Shown here: positions 5,060 through 63,720 of the stretch, in pieces
How the letters are laid out: each line of letters opens with the position of its first letter
Numbering within the stretch: the first letter of the stretch is position 1
Assembly: GCF_000143415.4 (NCBI RefSeq)
Contig: NW_003314338.1
Location: 274,157 to 338,156 of the forward strand
DNA: 64,000 bases
DNA from: Selaginella moellendorffii
Lineage: Eukaryota; Plantae; Lycopodiophyta
Direction of reading: 5' to 3'
The notes under the pieces: generated by a model
The model's database searches: none
Seen by the model: only the letters and a program-made list of their open reading frames with translations
Told to the model about the DNA's origin: nothing
Program-made: the position numbers and the translations under genes

Positions 5060-6226
5060 TGTAAGGAACCGACTCCCCGAGATGTCGTAGGCTAAAGGAT
5101 CCCCAAAAGCTTGAGCGAAATGACAAAGAGTTCATCAGATAGGACCAAGTTGAGGATCGAGTCCAAGACTGACTCTAGGACCGAGTTCGAGATAGGGTCC
5201 GGAATCGAGTCCGAGACCGACTCGGGGACCGAGTTCGAGTTCGAGTCCGAGTTCGAGACCGAGTTCGAGACGGAGTCCGAGATCCGAAATCGGGTCCGAG
5301 ACCGAGTCCGAGGTCGAGTCCGAGGTCAGGTCCGAGATCGGGTCTGAGATCGAGTCCGAGATCGAGTCCGAGACCGAATCCGAAGTCGGATGCGAAATCG
5401 GGTCCGAGATCGAGCCAGAGACTAAGTCCAAATACTAATACGGGTCAAGGGGTGAAAGCTCAAAGCGTGCGTCTCCCAGGGGGGGGGGGGGCTGCAGGGG
5501 GTTCCAAAAGTATAGTAGGGATAGTGAGGTCTAGGAACCAGTCTTGAAGGAACTCTCCAGTGGTGCTTCTAAACTGACTTGAGGTTGAGACTGGGGCCGA
5601 GGGGCCTTGGGTGGGAGTGAGCATGGGCCTGAGTGGTGCCGGAGGGGCCACCCAGGGAAGTGCTCAAGAGCAGCTCCCACTCCCGAAAGGGAAACCGACT
5701 GCGGTGCTCTTGGCTCAGGTGGAGTGGTGCCCCATTTGAGTACTTTGTGGCTCATTGGTCCTTGCCCTTCCTAGGGGCTTGGGCCTTCCCTTCGGGATGG
5801 AAGTGGGGGGGTAGAGGTACCCATACCGGGCCGTTAGGCCACGGTGTTTCGCCCCGACGTCCCGAAGCAAGTGCTGCACCCAAGACTTGGGATTTAGAGG
5901 GTCCCATGATCAAGTCTTGTGGTACCAAGGGGTGTTAGGAATCTGGAGGCTTGGTGTGCTTGGCTGTTTGTGCCTGCGGGGAGTGTAGCCGAACCTTAAG
6001 TCCAGTCTAACCCGGGGAGGGGGATTGGGAGAGATTTGGGAATCCGTAGATGGATGGCTAACACTCCGTTGCTCGTGCAGTAAGTAGCTGAAACCAAGTA
6101 GGACCAAGTAAGAGCTGGTACCATAGACAGGAACCTTGGCGAGGGAACTTAGCACAAGCCAAGGCAGAGTCGGTCGGATAGACGAGGTAAGCTGGCAAAT
6201 TGGAAAGGAAAAATTTGTGGCTTACA
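5060..6226 (+). repeat. 5' LTR of family A (1167 bp) with GAGTCC/GAGATC hexamer array
   Basis: TG...CA ends, direct repeat of 11462-12605, followed by the PBS. Confidence 0.95.
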
Positions 6227-6229
6227 ATT

Positions 6230-6241
6230 TGGTATCGGAGC
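6230..6241 (+). promoter_or_regulatory. Primer-binding site, tRNA-iMet-like (TGGTATCGGAGC)
   Basis: Starts 3 nt after the LTR end; one A>G difference from canonical TGGTATCAGAGC. Confidence 0.85.
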
Positions 6242-9200
6242 GTCTTCCTCAGTTCTAGCGAAGGATAGAGGCGGATTGCTGGGAGATGGCAAGGGCAGGA
6301 TGTAAGCGAACCCAGGCAGAGACGGAACCTCCTCCAGAGCTGGAGCCTCCGGTCGAACAGGAGGCTATGGATGAGGAATCTTTGCATGAGGAAGACTCCA
6401 GTGAGGCAACTTCCAAACAGGAGTCTGGTGGTGAGGTTCGGTCGTCCAAGGCTCGATTGGATGTTCTAGAAGGACAATTGGCACAGACCAATGCCCTGCT
6501 AGAGACTCTCGTACGCAAGCGAAAGCGTGACGAGAAGCAGAAGAAAAAGCGAAAGACTGTGGATGCTGGCAGCGCAGAAGGTGCGGACCCTTCGGCAGGG
6601 ACTGAGGCAAAATCAGACAAGGTCGAACAGACCGAAGTGGAATCAGGCCCTCAGGTAGTTCCCAAGTACAAACCAAAGCCCCCACCGGTCTTCAAGGGAG
6701 TGAACAACTATAAGTTGGTGGAGGATTGGTTTTACGATATGGAGGACTACTTTCGAGCGTTGCGATTACCGAGCTCAGAGAAGGTCTCATGTGCAAAACC
6801 ATACTTGGCAGATAATGCCAAGTCTTGGTGGAGAACGACAGAGGCCAATGAAGGACTGGTGGCCACTTGGGAAATGATGAAGGCGAGGATCCGCGCAACT
6901 TACGTTCCTCCGAATGCTACTCTGCATCTAAGAGACGAGCTGAGTAGGCTGAAGCAGACCGGAACCATTCAGGAGTATGTGAATGGGTTTATGGCAAAGA
7001 GGATACTTGTCATGGATATGGGGGATATGGATGCGTTCCATGCCTTCATATCAGGTTTGCAAACCTGGGCTCGCGGCGAAGTAATGCGGTGGAACCCGAC
7101 CAACTACAAGGAAGCATTGGATGCGGCCATCAAGGTGCATTTCAACAATAACCTGCGAAAGGGGAACACGACGGGGTCGGGATCCACGTTTAGCAAAGGG
7201 GCCAAACCAAGAGGAACGTTTAGCAGAGGGAAATTCAAGAAGAGTTTCTCTAAGAATGAGTCCTCGGGGTTCTGGAAAGGCAGATCCGGTGGCCAGCAAG
7301 CGAGTACGTGGGGGAGTCAAGCGAAAAGAGACAAACCCACAGATAAGAAGGTCAAGTCATATAGCAGCGTGGGAAATAACGTATGCTACAACTGCGGTGA
7401 AGCGGGACACTTCTCGAGGGAATGTCCCTACCCGAAGAAGGCCAGAGCCAATATGGCCATCAAGTCGGGTGAAGTCCAAACGGAGGTATGTGATCCAGTC
7501 CCTAACTCAAAGTTACTCATTACACGAGCAACTTTGGTAGAGAGTCGTTCGCGACATCTACTAGCCCTCCAAGGGAAGCTCGGAGGTAGCTTTGTTAAAA
7601 TCCTTATTGACAAGGGTGCTTTGGATAATTTTGTGGCTGCAGACATAGTCCGGCAAGCCGGACTAACGGTGCAGCGGCTAGGCGAACCAAGGACTATAGA
7701 GTTTGTTCAAGGTAGCCAAAGCACTGATGAGGTACTTCGACAAGCGAGAGTCGAAGTGGGGACTTGGAAGGTGGACATGGATTTCACCGTGTTGGACATG
7801 GTGGGATTTGACGTGATCTTCGGAATGGACTGGTTCAATCGATTTGTGGTAGCCCTGCATGGACAAGGTAGAAACCTTGTGGTACTGGCGAATGCCCAAG
7901 GAAGAAGATCTAGGGTGGAGGCGAAGGATCTAAAGGTAGGGCAAAGCAAGGCCAAAGATTCCTGCTTAAACCTGGTGTCCACGAGAGGACAACTCACTAA
8001 AGGAACTAAGGCGGCCTTTTTGTGCTTACTCTCGGTGAAGAGTGACAAAAAGACAGGAATGGAAGAAGTACCTTTAGTGATCCAGCGGGTGTTGGACCAA
8101 TTCCAGGATACCATGCCGGAGGAGCTACCGGCGGGGCTACCCCCAGCACGACCGATAGAACATAAGATTGAGCTGGTCGAGGGTGCTGAGGCAATGGTTC
8201 GTCCCCCTTATCGTTTGAACAAAAAAGAACTCAAGGAGCTCAAGTGCCAACTAGAGGAGTTGGTGGACAAAGGGTATGTTAGGTTGAGCAAGTCGCCGTA
8301 TGGGGCGCCGGTGTTATTTGTGAAAAAGAAAGATGGATCTATGCGCATGTGCATAGACTACTGGTTGCTCAACAAGTATACAAAGAAGAACAAATACCCT
8401 TTGCCAAGGATTGAGGACCTGTTCGATAGGTTGGGAAAGGCAAAATACTTCTCGAGGATTGACCTAAGGTCAGGATACTACCAGATCAGGGTAGCCGAGG
8501 AAGATGTCGAGAAGACAACCTGTCGAACGAGGTATGGGAGCTTTGAGTTTCTGGTGATGCCCTTCGGGCTATGTAATGCGCCGGCAACATTTTTGGCGCT
8601 AATGAACCACATCTTTGTACCCTATCTGGATCACTTTGTGGTCGTCTATATCGACGACATCCTGATCTATAGCGAGACGCTAGAGGAGCATGCCGAACAC
8701 TTGGCGAAGGTGTTTGAGAAACTAAGAGAACACAAACTATATGCTAAAGAGAGCAAATGTGACTTTGCTCAACAAGAGGTAAAGTTTCTCGGGCATGTGG
8801 TGGGCCAGGACGGGCTCAAGATGGACCTGGAGAAGGTCCAAGCGATCCAGGAATGGGAGCGACCATCCAATGTACACGAGTTGAGGGCATTCCTGGGGCT
8901 ATGCAACTACTATCGAAAGTTTATCAGACACTATTCGAGAGTAGCCCTGCCCTTAACGGACCAAATAGGAAAAGGGAAGATGGTGTGGACAGCGGAATGC
9001 GAGGTGGCATTCGTCCACCTCAAAGGGAAGTTGAGGAAGGCTCCCGTATTGGCATTACCAGACTTTGGTAAGGACTTTGAGGTAGAAACGGATGCTTCAA
9101 ACTTTGCGTTGGGTGCAGTTTTGAAGCAAGACAACCATCCGATAGCATTCTTCTTGAAAAAGCTGGACAAGGCTCAATAGAAGTGGCTTGCCCACGAGAA

Positions 9201-10159
9201 GGAATTGTTTGCGGTGGTCAAGGCGCTCAAGGAGTGGCGACACTACCTTGGGAGACACTTCAAGGTTTACCCGGACAATGTGGCAACAAAACACTTCTTG
9301 TCACAGCCCGACCTAAGAGGGAAACAAGGTTGGTGGGCCAATGCCTTGGCTGAGTTTGATTGCGAGATTCTGTACAAGCCTGGGAAGAGCAACATCGTGG
9401 CGGATGCGCTAAGTTGAAAAGCGAGGTTGAGGTTGGCAATATCCAGCGCAACAACAACCTTCTGGGACGATGTGCGGACAGCATATGAGAACGATGGTCT
9501 AGCACAAGAAGTGTTGCTGAGGAATCTAGAGGCGCAGGAAGCTCACCAGAGAGGTGAGCTGCCAACGGAAGAAAAAACGGGCTATGCGGAACGCAACGGA
9601 CTCATCTATTACAAGCAAACGAGGGTGTATGTTCCAGAAGGGGAACTAAGGAAGGTGGCCTTAGAAGAGTGTCATGACGGACCTCTTGCGAGACACGGCG
9701 GAGTGCCCAAGACGATGGGCTTACTCAAAAGGAAGTACCATTGGCCAGATATGGCTAAGGACGTCCAAGACTATGTAAAGACATGTCCAACATGTCAACA
9801 GGTAAAAGCCGTGACTAAGGCTAGTGGGGGCTTGTTGCAAAGCATCCCAATTCCAGATCGCCCGTGGAAATGTCTTACGATGGACTTCATCACAGGACTC
9901 CCCCCAAGCGAGGGGTTTGATGCGATATTCGTGGTGGTGGACCGATTTTCGAAAATGGCACATTTCATACCCACCACAACGGAGGTGGATGCAGAAGGTG
10001 TGGCGAAGCTGTTCTTCGAACAAGTGGTTCGAGTGCGGGGAAGACCGGAAGAGATCAACTCAGATCGAGATAAGATCTTCACCAGTAGGTTCTGGAGGAC
10101 TCTCCTAGAATAGTATCGCACCAAGTTGAAATTCAGCACAGCCTATCACCCACAGACAG

Positions 10160-10205
10160 GTATGGGGTATTAAGTCAAGTTGTTGGCATTAACACTTCTT
10201 GACAG
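10160..10205 (+). other. 46-nt GT-AG intron in the integrase catalytic core
   Basis: GTATGG...CATTAAC..TTCTTGACAG; removal restores AYHPQT-D-GQTERVN and the reading frame exactly. Confidence 0.85.
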
Positions 10206-10623
10206 ACGGACAAACGGAAAGGGTGAATAGGCAGCTGGAGGATTATTTGCGATGCTATGTCTCGGGAGACCAGACCGATTGGGTAAGTCATTTGGGACTT
10301 GCGGAAATGTGTTATAACAACTCACCACATTCGAGTATCGGGGTGAGTCCATGGGAAGTCATCAATGGGCGAGCTATTGAAGGTCCTGTGGAACTCGGCG
10401 TGGCTGAGTATCATGGAGAGTTGCCCGCAGTGGAGGCATTCACGGCGGAAAGACTCAGCATTTGGAATCTAGTAAGGGATTCCTTGGAACGGGCTCAACA
10501 AAGGCAAACCAAATACGCGAACCAGAAGCGTCGGGATGTAGAGTTCCAAGCTGGGGAGAAGGTGTGGCTGAACACCAAGAACCTCAGACTACCAAGTGGG
10601 ATCAGCCAAAAGTTGACCCAAAG

Positions 10624-10675
10624 GTAAAGATGCATGTATTCCTATAAATGAATTGATCTTGAGTTCCTTAAGCAG
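10624..10675 (+). other. 52-nt GT-AG intron before the GPY/F motif
   Basis: GTAAAG...TTAAGCAG; removal restores KLTQ-R-FAGPYEI and the reading frame exactly. Confidence 0.85.
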
Positions 10676-11149
10676 GTTCGCGGGGCCTTACGAGATTGAG
10701 GCACGAATCGGTAAAGTGGCTTACCGCCTCCGACTTCCTCGAGAGATGGGGAAGATGCACCCAGTGTTCCACGTGAACTTACTCAAGCCGTACTTTGAGG
10801 ATCCGCTTCGCAAGGACCAAGTGAGACCTTTACCTGAGGTTATCCAAGGGGAAGAGGAATACGAAGTCGAGGCCATCCTCAATGCGCGCCAGAGCAAGCG
10901 ACAAGGACGTGAGGTGAGAGAGTTCCATGTGAAGTGGAAAGGATTTCCACACTGCGAAGCAACATGGGAACCGGAGGAGAACCTAGCGAACGCACGAGAT
11001 CTAGTGGAGGAATTTCTGCAAGGCAGAACTCTATGTACTTATGCAAAATTCAATTAAAAAATATCAATTTGCAAAGTTGAGCAAGTGGCATATGTTGGGA
11101 CCCGAAGGCGTGCCAAAGGTAAGCTAATTAGCATGGGTTGGATAGGTCG

Positions 11150-11400
11150 ACCAGGCGTAGGGCACTACGCCCGACTCCCCGCGGGGATGTCGAATCCGTA
11201 GACGTATTCTAGGGAGGTTGGGTTCGAGTCCCAACCCCCTAGTAAAGCAAGGCTGGGTTCAAGTCCCGACCCCATACTAGGGCGTGGTGAGGTTAGGGGT
11301 ATAGGGACACCTATATTCCGTTGTCATGGGCTCTTGGCCGGGGAGGCTAACTTAGGCACACCGCTAAGTGGGGGGATGCCCCCGGAGACATGGTCAACAA
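11150..11400 (+). ncRNA. Conserved structured 3'UTR RNA module (two T-loop-like hairpins plus multibranch element), shared with family B
   Basis: Homologous to 47400-47820 with compensatory base changes in several stems. Confidence 0.6.
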
Positions 11401-11461
11401 GTCGTAGGATAAAACGAGACGTTCGATGTGGGCATCGAACTTCTTCTATGGGTGGTGGAGT

Positions 11462-12605
11462 TGTAAGGAACCGACTCCCCGAGATGTCGTAATCTAAAGG
11501 ATCCCCAAAAGCTTGACCGAAATGACAAAGAGTTCATCGGATGGGACCAAGCGAAATAAGATCGAGTCTCAAGCCCGACTCTAGGATCGAGTTCGAGATA
11601 GAGTCCGGAATCGAGTCCGAGCCCGCCTCGAGGCCCGAGTTCGAGTCCGAGTTCGAGCCCGAGTTCGAGATGGAGTCCGAGATCCAAAATCCGGGTCCGA
11701 GCCCGGTTCCGAGGTCGGGTCCGAGATCGAGTCCGAGATCGAGTCGGAGTCCGAGATCCGAAGTCGGATCCGAAATTGGGTCCGAGATCAAGCCAGAGCC
11801 TAAGTCCAAATACTAATACGGGTCAAGGGGTGAAAGCCCAAAGCGNNNNNNNNNNNNNNNNNNNNNNNNNNNNNNNNNNNNNNNNNNNNNNNNNNNNNNN
11901 NNNNNNNNNNNNNNNNNNNNNNNNNNNNNNNNNNNNNNNNNNNNNNNNNNNNNNNNNNNNNNNNNNNNNNNNNNNNNNNNNNNNNNNNNNNNNNNNNNNN
12001 NNNNNNNNNNNNNNNNNNNNNNNNNNNNNNNNNNNNNNNNNNNNNNNNNNNNNNNNNNNNNNNNNNNNNNNNNNNNNNNNNNNNNNNNNNNNNNNNNNNN
12101 NNNNNNNNNNNNNNNNNNNNNNNNNNNNNNNNNNNNNNNNNNNNNNNNNNNNNNNNNNNNNNNNNNNNNNTCGGGATGGAAGTGGGGGGGTAAAGGTACC
12201 CATACCGGGCCGCTAGGCCACGGTGTTTCGCCCCGACGTCCCGAAGCAAGTGCTGCACCCAAGACTTGGGATTTAGAGGGTCCCATGATCAAGTCTTGTG
12301 GTACCAAGGGGTGTTAGGAATCTGGAGACTTGGTGTGCTTGGCTGTTTGTGCTTGCGGGGAGTGTAGCCGAACCTTAAGTCCAGTCTAACCCGGGGAGGG
12401 GGATTGGGAGAGATTTGGGAATCCGTAGATGGATGGCTAACACTCCGTTGCTCGTGCAGTAAGTAGCTGAAACCAAGTAGGACCAAGTAGGAGCTAGTAC
12501 CATAGACAGGAACCTTGGCGAGGGAACTTAGCACAAGCCAAGGCAGAGTCGGTCGGATAGACGAGGTAAGCTGGCAAATTGGAAAGGAAAATTTTGTGGC
12601 TTACA
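11462..12605 (+). repeat. 3' LTR of family A (assembly gap 11846-12170)
   Basis: Repeat of 5060-6226, preceded by the PPT and followed by the TSD. Confidence 0.95.
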
Positions 12606-59430: not shown

Positions 59431-60977
59431 ACGCTATCATCCCAGTACACTACCCTTCCAAAAAAAAAAAACAGAAAAAGAAATTTCACTATCTTATAGA
59501 GGGAACAATTTCTTAGAACTCACTTTGCTACTGGCTAGACCTTTGTATGGTTTTTCATTCTTTATAGTAAAGTTAAGCTTCTATTGACAATCAACTCTTT
59601 GCTCAAATGCATCAACAGTGTCAGAATTGAACAGGAACCAGCACATTACAGTGGGACTAAATGTGCACTCAATTTTAAATGCAAAACAAAAGACAGTTAC
59701 ATATTGAAGCCAACTTGCTTGCTGTGATTTTGCTACATTATGTGAATTAAAAACTGTGCACTATTAAGTGCCAATTCGACCACTAACAGGAAGAGAGCAT
59801 CTCTAGGCCACCGAGCTTGGCATGGAGACAGGCAGTCAATTTTGTAATTGTCAATAAATGAAATCATCCATTTCATCTACTTCTGGAATCACGTGCTGCT
59901 ATTCTTTACCCCTGTTAAAGCTTACATAGCCATCATCAAACAAAGCTGATGTATGTTAGGTGAATGGGTATTTATGACTGCATTATTTGATAAATGGATT
60001 TACAGTGAAATTCGTTTTTTCTTACAAGTTCCTTGTAATTGTGATACAAATCATATGTAACTTTTTTAACAGCATGCAAAAGCTTAGAAAGGAATTCACA
60101 TACCTTAGGTGTAAAGATTGAGTATGTAAACCTGAGTTTCTTCGTGCCATGGTATATTTTGAGCTTACTACAGATCTTGAAATTGAAAATCTTCAAGCGT
60201 ATACCATCAACATGCAAAGAGAACACAGGATAATTCTAATCTTGCATAGTTCGTTGGCTGGCAGTCCTATGATTTCTTGTGCAGCCTCTTGATATCTTTG
60301 TGTGTGTGTGTGCTTCCATACTCCACTATTCAAGAAGCATGCATCCAATACAATTAATGACCTGCATAATCATTTATGTTTATTCTGGTTTGTAAATAAG
60401 AAAACGCATTTACTGTTTCCCATTCGTCTCAAGGAAAGCATAGTCCAGGAATCTTACAAATGAATTCAGATGGATACCCCACAAATCTATTAAACCTGAA
60501 ACTTGGCCTCAAGTGTTTCACTGTTGTCCGTGGCAGTGGTCAGGGCACCAGGCTTTGTATCTATGTTCATCACACACAACACATTTGAATTTTCTTTGGC
60601 TTTTCGGATCCCATCTTCTGTGCACTTCATGGTCGCTAACGCTAGGGTTGCTGGGTGCTAGGATATTTAAAAAATCGTCTATTGAGAACCATTCTCCAAC
60701 TGCAATAGTTTGTGTATATATTGATCAAACCGTTGGCTGTTACTTCTACCTTGATATGTAGGGCTTGGCTGAATTGGAAACAAATAAAAAAGTGTTGATC
60801 ACAAGTCATTGTCAAAGTTTACATAGAAAGAAAGAGATGCAACTTGTTATCTCTTGCAGTAACTACTTTTGCCATATCATGTCACACCCGGGTCTATTAC
60901 TAAACCCGAACTACCTTTGAGAAAACAAAATGACACCTTAAATACTGACTAACTCGCTCTTGAGAGCTTAAAGCCAG

Positions 60978-62166
60978 TGTAGCGGTTCTAAAATGGGCGT
61001 AAGCCCGGGCAAGGCTTACTGGAGTCCACAGCAGGTCAAAGCCCTTACTGTGCTCAGATCTTGTTCGCCCTTGCTTGTTGTGCTGTTCCCAAGCCAATCT
61101 TCTCCCCTAGCCCTAGCTCCCTTTATCACCACCCTGCTGCATCTCAATACCGCTGATGCGCCGCCCGACCTCTGTAACATACCGGTCTCCTCCCCACCAC
61201 GTTGGATCTCCCTGCCGAGTCATCTCTGTCCATGTCATCATCCACGTGTTCTGCCTCACTTTGTTCTACGGGCTCGTTTTTTATTGGCCGCTACAGCTGT
61301 AGCGGTTCTTCTCCCCCATAAAATGGAGACACTTCCACGCGTTTCCCCTTGCCATCTTAGTGGTCTCCTACCTTGTGTGGTGGTTTGAGTGTCAGGGTCA
61401 AGATTGAGCGTTGCATGCCTCATTCTGATGCCAGTACTTCCCTCACCTGTTGTGGTTCACTCCCCCAGCTGCTACACAGAATTTGGATCTGTGAACTTGT
61501 TGGGTGATTGTGTATGGTCCTTCGTAGCTAGCACCTAGGGTAGATCACCAAGATCCCCCCACCACTGGCCTCCTCGGCTCAGCTCATTCCTCAGCCCCCT
61601 GGCTGGATGTATGGCAGCTCCAACCTTTGGATGCCATGCCTTGTGACCAAACCTCTTTGGTCACACTGGCTGTCCTAGCCAGGAAAGTCCTTTGGCCATC
61701 CGTGTCCTCCATGCATGACACAATGCACATCCCCGCACAAGCCCTCATGCTCAAAGTTTCAGTCATGCCAGAAATGGAATTGAAAAAGAAAATTCGTATA
61801 GACTCCAGTATTCCCAGCCCAGATGTGATGAAGTGCCCCTCATCTCCACCATAAAATGGGTGTAAAGCCCGGGCGAGGCTTACTGGAGTCCACACCAGGT
61901 CAAAGCCCTTACTGTGCTCAGATCTTGATCGCCCTTGCTCGTCACGCCATTCCCAAGCCAATCCTCTCCCCTAGCCCTAGCTCCCGCCACGCCCTTTATC
62001 ACCGCCCTGCTGCATTCCAAGAAGTCCCCGCTGATGCGCCACCCGATCCTCTGTAATAACAAACCGGTCTCCTCCCCGCCACGTCAGATCTCCCTGCGGA
62101 GTCATCTCTGTCCATGTCATCATCCACGTGTTCTGCCTCACTTTGTTCTACGGGTTGGCCGCTACA
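60978..62166 (-). mobile_element. Non-autonomous retroelement with split / circularly permuted LTRs
   Basis: TGTAGCGG...CCGCTACA termini, flanks CCAG/CCGG, ~310-bp direct repeats 60989-61295 and 61852-62166, tRNA-Ala-like PBS 61836-61851, PPT ~61308-61317, internal palindrome 61288-61305. Confidence 0.75.
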
Positions 62167-63239
62167 CCGGTTACAAGAGTCCTTGGAGTCCACGGAAAAC
62201 ATAGATACATTGTTTTCTAAAGGTAATTTGGCTTGCTATCCTCAGGGCGAGGTTCCCCTGCATCATAATTTCCTGCTTTCCAAAACAGGAAACATCTTCT
62301 TGGCAGCGGTGTACAAACACTACATCATTGTTCTGTGGAGCGTCCTTCTGTTTCAGCAGAAAATCAATGAAGTCAGCGGGCATACACTTGATCTTTTGCT
62401 TCTTATATTGGTCACACCAGCCTTTCTATTTTTAGCCTTTCTTAGGATCTGACAGGGACAGATGCCACTCTTCATCCTCTTCCATCCTTCACAAACCCTA
62501 TAAAACAGATCAGGCGAATGCAAAAGGCCATAAACTTGAAGATGGTGCACAGACAATAAGAACACAAAATGCTGCAAATCTGTGTAACATAACGCACTAT
62601 TGGTGGTGTTGTCAAGCACGCAAATACCTAGCCAAATAAGTCACTGTCTATAGTATCATGTAATTTTATTCTGGGTCTTGATTTGAGTTTCAAGGGTGGT
62701 ATTTTCAATAACCTATTTTGTGACACTCAACACACGCTTCAAACCATTCCAAAAAGACAAATGGGTCTCATAGTAGCTCACGGTTCATTTCACATTGCCT
62801 GGTGATCATTGTTTTCTAACTTGCTACAATCTTGACTCCAAAAGAAGTTTATTTCCTTTTTTTCTTATGCTTCTCTGCTTTACTTCACTGGCCTCGCAAT
62901 TGGAAGATTTTTAACTCAAAGGCCATTACCTTATCTCGCAACTGCTGTAGCCCTGAGTCCTTTGCCACAAATATCGCTGAGGGTTCATGTTTGATGCTGT
63001 TTACCGTGGCATGCAGATCATGCACTGCTAACTGTTCTAATCATGATCATGCATTATGCTAACTGCTCTTTGGCCTGTGTAGACAGAAGAAATGTCGATT
63101 TATGTTGGTGAAAGACCCTCCCCTCAGGTTCATACGTCCAGTAACGACTATAGCTAGTAGCAGTCACTTGTTCATCCAGTAACTTCATGTAAACAAATCA
63201 AAAGAAAATAGAGCTGCAGCTTAGTTGAAATCCTGTGCT

Positions 63240-63720
63240 TTCAGAATCAAATTTGCTTGTAGAACATGTGAAAGTCACTACACATTTCATAAAAGCACTT
63301 ACTGCTGCCTGAATACACAGGGAAACGTAATAGCAAGTCCATGAGATTAAAGAGCACGTATGAACTTTCTTTGACACCAATGATACTGTCTTCTATCACG
63401 ATGCACTTGTCCGGAGTTTTTGAAAAACAAAAAAACTGATTAAAATAACACGAGCAGAAAACCACGTTTACCTCTTCTGCGACTTTGTAGAACATTGGAT
63501 TTGGTTTTTCTTCTTTGACATCATCGCTATCAAACTATGAGAAATTTTCATAGTTTGGTTTTGATCTATCTGTTAGAACTGAGGAATAATTACAAATCTG
63601 GTTGCGTTCGGAGAGCAACTTGTTCGATGCTTCTTCCTGAGATTATAATGATGATTTCTTGATAGGCATTTTTTATTTTTTTTGAAAAAAGTAAAAACCA
63701 CAGAACTTTCACATGGCAGC
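63240..63720 (-). pseudogene. CbbY-like HAD-superfamily hydrolase fragment
   Basis: DSDDVKEEKPNPMFYKVAEE, KCIVIEDSIIGV and QAAVSAFMKCVVTFTCST in short-intron-separated exons; motif I not found. Confidence 0.7.

Follow-up and report, generated by a model that had tools for sequence, protein, structure and literature searches.

An LTR-type retroelement copy with split direct repeats in Selaginella moellendorffii and its possible insertion through an internal palindrome

How does a retroelement that carries both a tRNA primer-binding site (PBS) and a polypurine tract (PPT) come to lie in a genome with its direct repeats split? The question is raised by a 1,189-bp element in Selaginella moellendorffii, found as one copy (n = 1) at positions 60978-62166 of the 64-kb window (the whole stretch of DNA that was analyzed) and read on the minus strand, where the order is ccgg / A1 / PBS / interior / purine tract / B1 / GC / A2 / B2 / ctgg. 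Its features are given below.

62167-62170, minus strand: left flank CCGG, candidate 4-bp target-site duplication (3/4 against CTGG; the mismatch is C-to-T at a CpG)
61852-62166, minus strand: A1, the 5′ long repeat, 315 bp, TGTAGCGG...CCCATTTTA (repeat finder, MAFFT)
61836-61851, minus strand: primer-binding site TGGTGGAGATGAGGGG, complementary to the tRNA-Ala 3′ end, starting at the first base after A1
61318-61835, minus strand: non-coding interior, ~520 bp, without Pfam domain, Rfam family or repeat similarity
61309-61326, minus strand: CCATTTTA-TGGGGGAGAA, the end of the interior directly before B1
61309-61317, minus strand: purine run GGGGGAGAA, adjoining B1
61306-61317, minus strand: polypurine tract GGGGGAGAAGAA, 12 nt, its final 3 bases being the initial 3 of B1
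61298-61308, minus strand: B1, GAACCGCTACA, 11 bp, 11/11 against B2; the repeat defined by reverse transcription starts here
61296-61297, minus strand: GC spacer between B1 and A2
61288-61305: perfect 18-bp palindrome CCGCTACAGCTGTAGCGG, equal to CCGCTACA-GC-TGTAGCGG, at the B1/A2 junction; proposed cutting site
60989-61295, minus strand: A2, the 3′ long repeat, 307 bp (repeat finder, MAFFT)
60978-60988, minus strand: B2, GAACCGCTACA, 11 bp, joined straight onto the final base of A2
60974-60977, minus strand: right flank CTGG, candidate 4-bp target-site duplication

The coordinates that the initial annotation had assigned to these features are all correct, with A1 and A2 recovered by the repeat finder and MAFFT, the palindrome perfect and B1 equal to B2. 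In the MAFFT alignment the two long repeats are ~91% identical over 296 aligned positions; they differ by 26 substitutions, of which 21 are transitions and 8 fall at CpG, and by five indels of 1-11 bp each. Such a predominance of transitions agrees with repeats that entered the site without differences and have degenerated there since. The interior contains no Pfam domain, coding remnant or coding capacity, no decayed third repeat and no repeat similarity, and its fold z-score of −1.6 is nothing unusual. A 131-aa open reading frame that runs across A2, the palindrome, B1 and the interior had no word-based match among the proteins searched, a set that lacks the query itself. No Rfam family was found in the element, and a hammerhead ribozyme is absent both at the gathering score and at E values up to 10. 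Together, these results are best explained by an LTR-type retrotransposon that is old and dead, encodes no protein and falls in the size range of TRIM or small-LTR elements.

To our knowledge, the 3′ end of tRNA-Ala is conserved across eukaryotes. The PBS matches 15 of the first 16 bases of TGGTGGAGATGCGGGGTATCGA, a published northern probe for tRNA-Ala that comes from Drosophila (PMC4506996), and the 15/16 match given in the initial annotation therefore holds against a published sequence. Within the 64-kb window it is the sole tRNA-Ala site at one mismatch or fewer. The PPT adjoins B1, not A2, and thus precedes the 3′ repeat only if that repeat is B-GC-A. Both priming sites lie within a copy of a 20-nt direct repeat, CCATTTTATGGkGGAGAwGA, of which the copies at 61307-61326 (the PPT side, CCATTTTATGGGGGAGAAGA) and 61840-61859 are identical at 18/20 positions. 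The purine tract thus resembles a degenerate copy of the end of A plus the tRNA-Ala PBS, a feature that the initial annotation had missed.

Three boundaries coincide in the element, with a 1-nt ambiguity: the boundary between A1 and the PBS, the boundary between the PPT and B1, and the breakpoint between A2 and B2. Because these three agree, reverse transcription would define the repeat as B-GC-A, of ~320 bp, as had been proposed for the unit running from PPT to PBS. It is well supported, therefore, that reverse transcription made a B-GC-A repeat and that the copy holds the joint of both cDNA ends; equally well supported is the reading of the A2|B2 fusion as two blunt cDNA ends that were joined, either in a two-LTR circle or at the junction of a head-to-tail pair. 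Read in register, the repeat runs GAACC...TTTTA, and TG and CA are found 13 bp inside it as well as at the outer ends of the element; the repeats are consequently not bounded by TG...CA in register with the PBS and PPT, as those of an ordinary LTR element are. A canonical LTR consisting of A-B was also considered and rejected, as neither the PBS nor the PPT fits that register. A simple over-unit-length concatemer of a circle is rejected because A2 is followed by B2, not by the PBS, and neither random deletion nor a DNA transposon predicts a fusion of A2 to B2 at exactly the PBS and PPT boundaries.

The small non-autonomous plant LTR retrotransposons known as TRIM and SMART include Selaginella families (PMC4717578, PMC10886601). 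The present element shares with them its small size, its lack of coding sequence, two long direct repeats, a tRNA PBS and a purine tract, as well as mobilization that is presumably due to an autonomous LTR element; at ~1.2 kb with 310-bp repeats it stands at the upper size limit. Whereas TRIM repeats are each bounded by TG..CA in the PBS/PPT register, however, the Selaginella repeats are shifted by 13 bp and are accompanied by an extra 11-bp B at the 3′ end. Plant retrozymes are 1-1.5 kb long and have ~350-bp repeats, a non-coding interior, a PBS and a PPT; they make 4-bp duplications and pass through a circular intermediate (PMC5680766). The present element is like them in size, repeat length, non-coding interior and the presence of PBS and PPT. 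Identity with a retrozyme was rejected on the absence of the hammerhead ribozyme (Rfam, E up to 10); the primer here is tRNA-Ala, and the retrozyme circle consists of RNA rather than DNA.

The element's outer ends, TGTAGCGG and CCGCTACA, each correspond to one half of the CA-GC-TG palindrome that lies inside it (CTACA-GC-TGTAG). They form an 8-bp inverted repeat with TG exactly at the start and CA exactly at the end, and the GC of the palindrome is missing symmetrically from both outer junctions. The initial annotation had described a perfect 18-bp palindrome with TG and CA buried inside it, and this is indeed present. A perfect 18-bp palindrome is no rarity in a sequence of 64 kb, being present in 37% of block shuffles; the identity of its half-sites with the outer termini is an 8-bp inverted match in fixed register, with a chance probability of ~4^-8. 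At the outer flanks CCGG and CTGG match at three of four positions, which is expected ~5% of the time by chance, and no duplication is found at the inner junctions. The proposal of a 4-bp target-site duplication followed by CpG decay agrees with the lone mismatch being a CpG transition, and is weakened by a match of only 3/4 at that chance level.

The reading that we favor, and to which we give about an even chance, is that an integrase cut the palindrome of a two-LTR circle or concatemer and then inserted the element. Ordinary reverse transcription, primed by tRNA-Ala and by the purine tract, would yield a linear cDNA with B-GC-A as its ~320-bp terminal repeat. The blunt ends of this cDNA, GAACC... 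and ...CCCATTTTA, would present no integrase signal, there being no CA near the 3′ end, and the palindrome a few bases inside the repeat would resemble an LTR-LTR circle junction. First, the cDNA ends would become joined, whether by closure to a two-LTR circle or head to tail in a concatemer, and this would create the A2|B2 joint; next, at one copy of the palindrome, a helper element's integrase would cut after each CA, leaving recessed CA-OH ends with 2-nt 5′ overhangs, which are the normal 3′-processed substrate, and would finally insert the molecule by way of a 4-bp staggered cut at CCGG. The outcome of joining, cutting and insertion would be A1-PBS-interior-PPT-B1-GC-A2-B2, and the empty site expected under a single insertion with CCGG duplication would read ...TTGTAACCGGCTTTAAG... 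Had a linear cDNA been cut at the palindrome of each of its repeats, only A-interior-B would have resulted, a product devoid of repeats and unable to replicate; the joined-end form alone would yield a replicable product like the observed copy.

What we infer, from the sequence of the finished insertion, is that there was a circle, that an integrase acted and that 4 bp of target were duplicated. The circle-based origin put forward in the initial annotation stands as far as joined cDNA ends and TG/CA outer ends are concerned, and is narrowed by the fact that a concatemer or an end-to-end template switch would give the same sequence. The mechanism is further weakened by its basis in one old copy (n = 1), by the 3/4 duplication, by the presence of AACCG in the left flank and by the likeness of the PPT to the end of A plus the PBS.

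Parts of the favored mechanism have counterparts in other systems. IS3- and IS30-type bacterial insertion sequences transpose from circles or tandem dimers in which the ends of the element abut; their TG..CA ends face each other across a 2-4-bp spacer, and this junction is the reactive one for a DDE transposase with the retroviral-integrase fold. Unlike the Selaginella element, these are bacterial DNA elements that do not undergo reverse transcription. The integrases of PFV and HIV-1 cut their cognate palindromic LTR-LTR junctions into 3′-processed ends (PMC1180852, PMC1905944), and the two-LTR circles of these viruses share with the present element a CA-NN-TG palindrome, which in those circles is cut after each CA. 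As recounted in PMC11054761, a circle junction placed inside SNV was reported as an integration site (Panganiban and Temin 1984); the mainstream view takes linear DNA to be what is integrated and regards two-LTR circles as dead ends (PMC11054761). The PFV, HIV-1 and SNV cases all concern animal retroviruses, in vitro or engineered, with a junction formed by the LTR ends themselves, whereas the palindrome described here is internal to the repeat of an element that occurs naturally in a plant.

The foremost alternative dispenses with integrase for the insertion: a joined-end cDNA could have been broken by a host nuclease at or near the fragile palindrome and captured by end joining in a chromosome break. 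This too requires joined ends for the A2|B2 joint, and the imperfect duplication is in its favor. Nevertheless, we consider it unlikely, as the ends are symmetric at exactly TG and CA, with one base lost on each side of the center, and show neither filler nor terminal deletion, an exactness that end joining would rarely reach.

The layout also invites comparison with the DIRS order, whose Ngaro, PAT and VIPER elements have split direct repeats that are defined by the arrangement A1-[interior]-B1A2B2 (PMC8547959, PMC4157794, PMC6681497). Both have this repeat topology, which corresponds to a two-repeat circle that has been opened at its B/A junction. The initial annotation was correct in noting the resemblance to Ngaro and PAT and understated it, as the topologies are identical. 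The novelty thus lies not in the topology as such but in its occurrence together with a tRNA PBS, a purine tract and TG..CA ends. Unlike Ngaro, PAT and VIPER, the Selaginella element lacks a reverse transcriptase or tyrosine-recombinase gene, has its tRNA-Ala PBS and purine tract at the repeat boundaries, and has TG..CA ends with a duplication-like flank. If it belonged to the DIRS order as a non-autonomous element (Ngaro, PAT or VIPER type), its circle would have been inserted by a recombinase at the palindromic B/A junction, which would account for the layout and would agree with inverted repeats around a short spacer being typical of tyrosine-recombinase sites. We hold this to be quite unlikely. 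No reverse transcriptase or recombinase gene is recognized in the element by Pfam, and among plants the order has been reported from green algae only and is unreported from land plants (PMC9033089). Moreover, conservative recombination would insert the element without a target duplication and leave an overlap sequence in common, whereas the outer junctions share none with the internal junction and GC is lost on both sides, and the TG..CA ends with their duplication-like flank rather suggest a DDE integrase.

Another possibility is that no palindrome was cleanly opened, and that the copy is an ordinary B-GC-A LTR element whose left B has decayed (to AACCG-G, with deletion of the palindrome center) and whose right end is an 11-15-nt stump of a third repeat. 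Palindrome centers are prone to deletion, the left flank (...TAACCGG-TGTAG) has AACCG in common with B, and the right flank, with one G taken out, goes on as CTG beyond B2. The shared 5-mer in the left host flank (62168-62172) occurs in B1 at 61303-61307 and in B2 at 60983-60987; it may reflect chance, a target preference or a decayed B. As evidence for a lost B, however, it is a match of five bases in free register, expected ~5% of the time by chance; the stump would still require the A|B end-joint, and there would be neither a target duplication nor TG/CA at the ends of the element. We regard this explanation as improbable.

Least of all do we favor two adjacent insertions, a short-TIR element (A-interior-B) next to its internal-deletion derivative (A-B), which is highly improbable even though TGTAGCGG...CCGCTACA bound both units, because the units have no duplications of their own (CCGG against GCTG, and CAGC against CTGG), the deletion end-points would have to hit both the first base of the tRNA-Ala match and the end of the purine run by chance, a PBS is useless to a DNA transposon, and the TIR is just 8 bp rather than tens of bp. 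TGT..ACA ends with a 4-bp duplication do recall what we take to be the signature of Ginger-type DNA transposons.

Returning to insertion through the palindrome by an integrase, the copy suggests that an integrase is able, if only now and then, to insert DNA with joined ends by way of an internal palindrome. Two-LTR circles are usually viewed as dead-end by-products, and split direct repeats as the hallmark of tyrosine-recombinase retrotransposons; were the arrangement found to recur in a family, it would reopen both the question of circles as productive intermediates and that of the origin of the DIRS-order repeat architecture. A more far-reaching version, which we consider rather doubtful, is that Selaginella harbors a lineage of integrase-dependent LTR retroelements in which the integrase sites are built into the LTR as a circle-junction palindrome. 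If this were so, only joined-end, two-LTR-circle DNA would insert in replicable form and all copies would have split repeats; such a lineage would offer, in nature, a parallel to the circle model of retroviral integration that has been discarded, and would stand to the split repeats of Ngaro and PAT elements either as an integrase-based convergent twin or as an evolutionary bridge. In practical terms, LTR finders that require TG..CA repeats in the PBS/PPT register will mis-annotate copies of this kind.

Further copies and a potential helper were sought. No further copy was found within the 64-kb window (blastn, word size 9), and two pattern scans of metagenomes, one with the junction and one with a 24-mer conserved in A, gave no match. 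Three complete LTR elements checked in the window have tRNA-iMet primer sites and perfect 5-bp duplications (TATAT, CCCTT and TTAGG). The two in-window candidates for the helper, a gypsy element at 5060-12605 and a protein-less LTR family at 30-56 kb, were rejected on their use of tRNA-iMet, their canonical TG..CA LTRs and their 5-bp duplications, and a helper, if there was one, would thus have come from a different lineage.

As for the host sequence near the insertion, the flanking open reading frames have no Pfam match. A short reading frame at 63250-63495 on the minus strand contains a HAD-type hydrolase-like motif (...CIVIEDSIIGV...) and has no Pfam match at E values up to 0.1. The element may lie inside an intron or spacer of a host gene.

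The window also contains LTR elements of conventional structure. The element at 5060-12605 on the plus strand is a complete Ty3/gypsy retrotransposon in which gag, protease, reverse transcriptase and RNase H are encoded in one 964-aa open reading frame and integrase in a separate one; its LTRs run TGTAAGG...GCTTACA, its PBS is of the tRNA-iMet type (TGGTATCGGAGC), its PPT is ATGGGTGGTGGAGT and its perfect 5-bp duplication is TATAT. The protein-less family forms an array on the plus strand, with members at 34210-~41075 and 43259-~50639 and more LTR copies at ~25.5, 30.9 and 55.9 kb. The LTRs of this family exceed 1.3 kb, run TGTGAGAC...GCTTACA and are packed with repeats of 12-bp period; the PBS begins ATTTGGTA... 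and the perfect 5-bp duplications are CCCTT and TTAGG. The PPT motif TATGGGTGGTGGAG is common to the protein-less family and the gypsy element.
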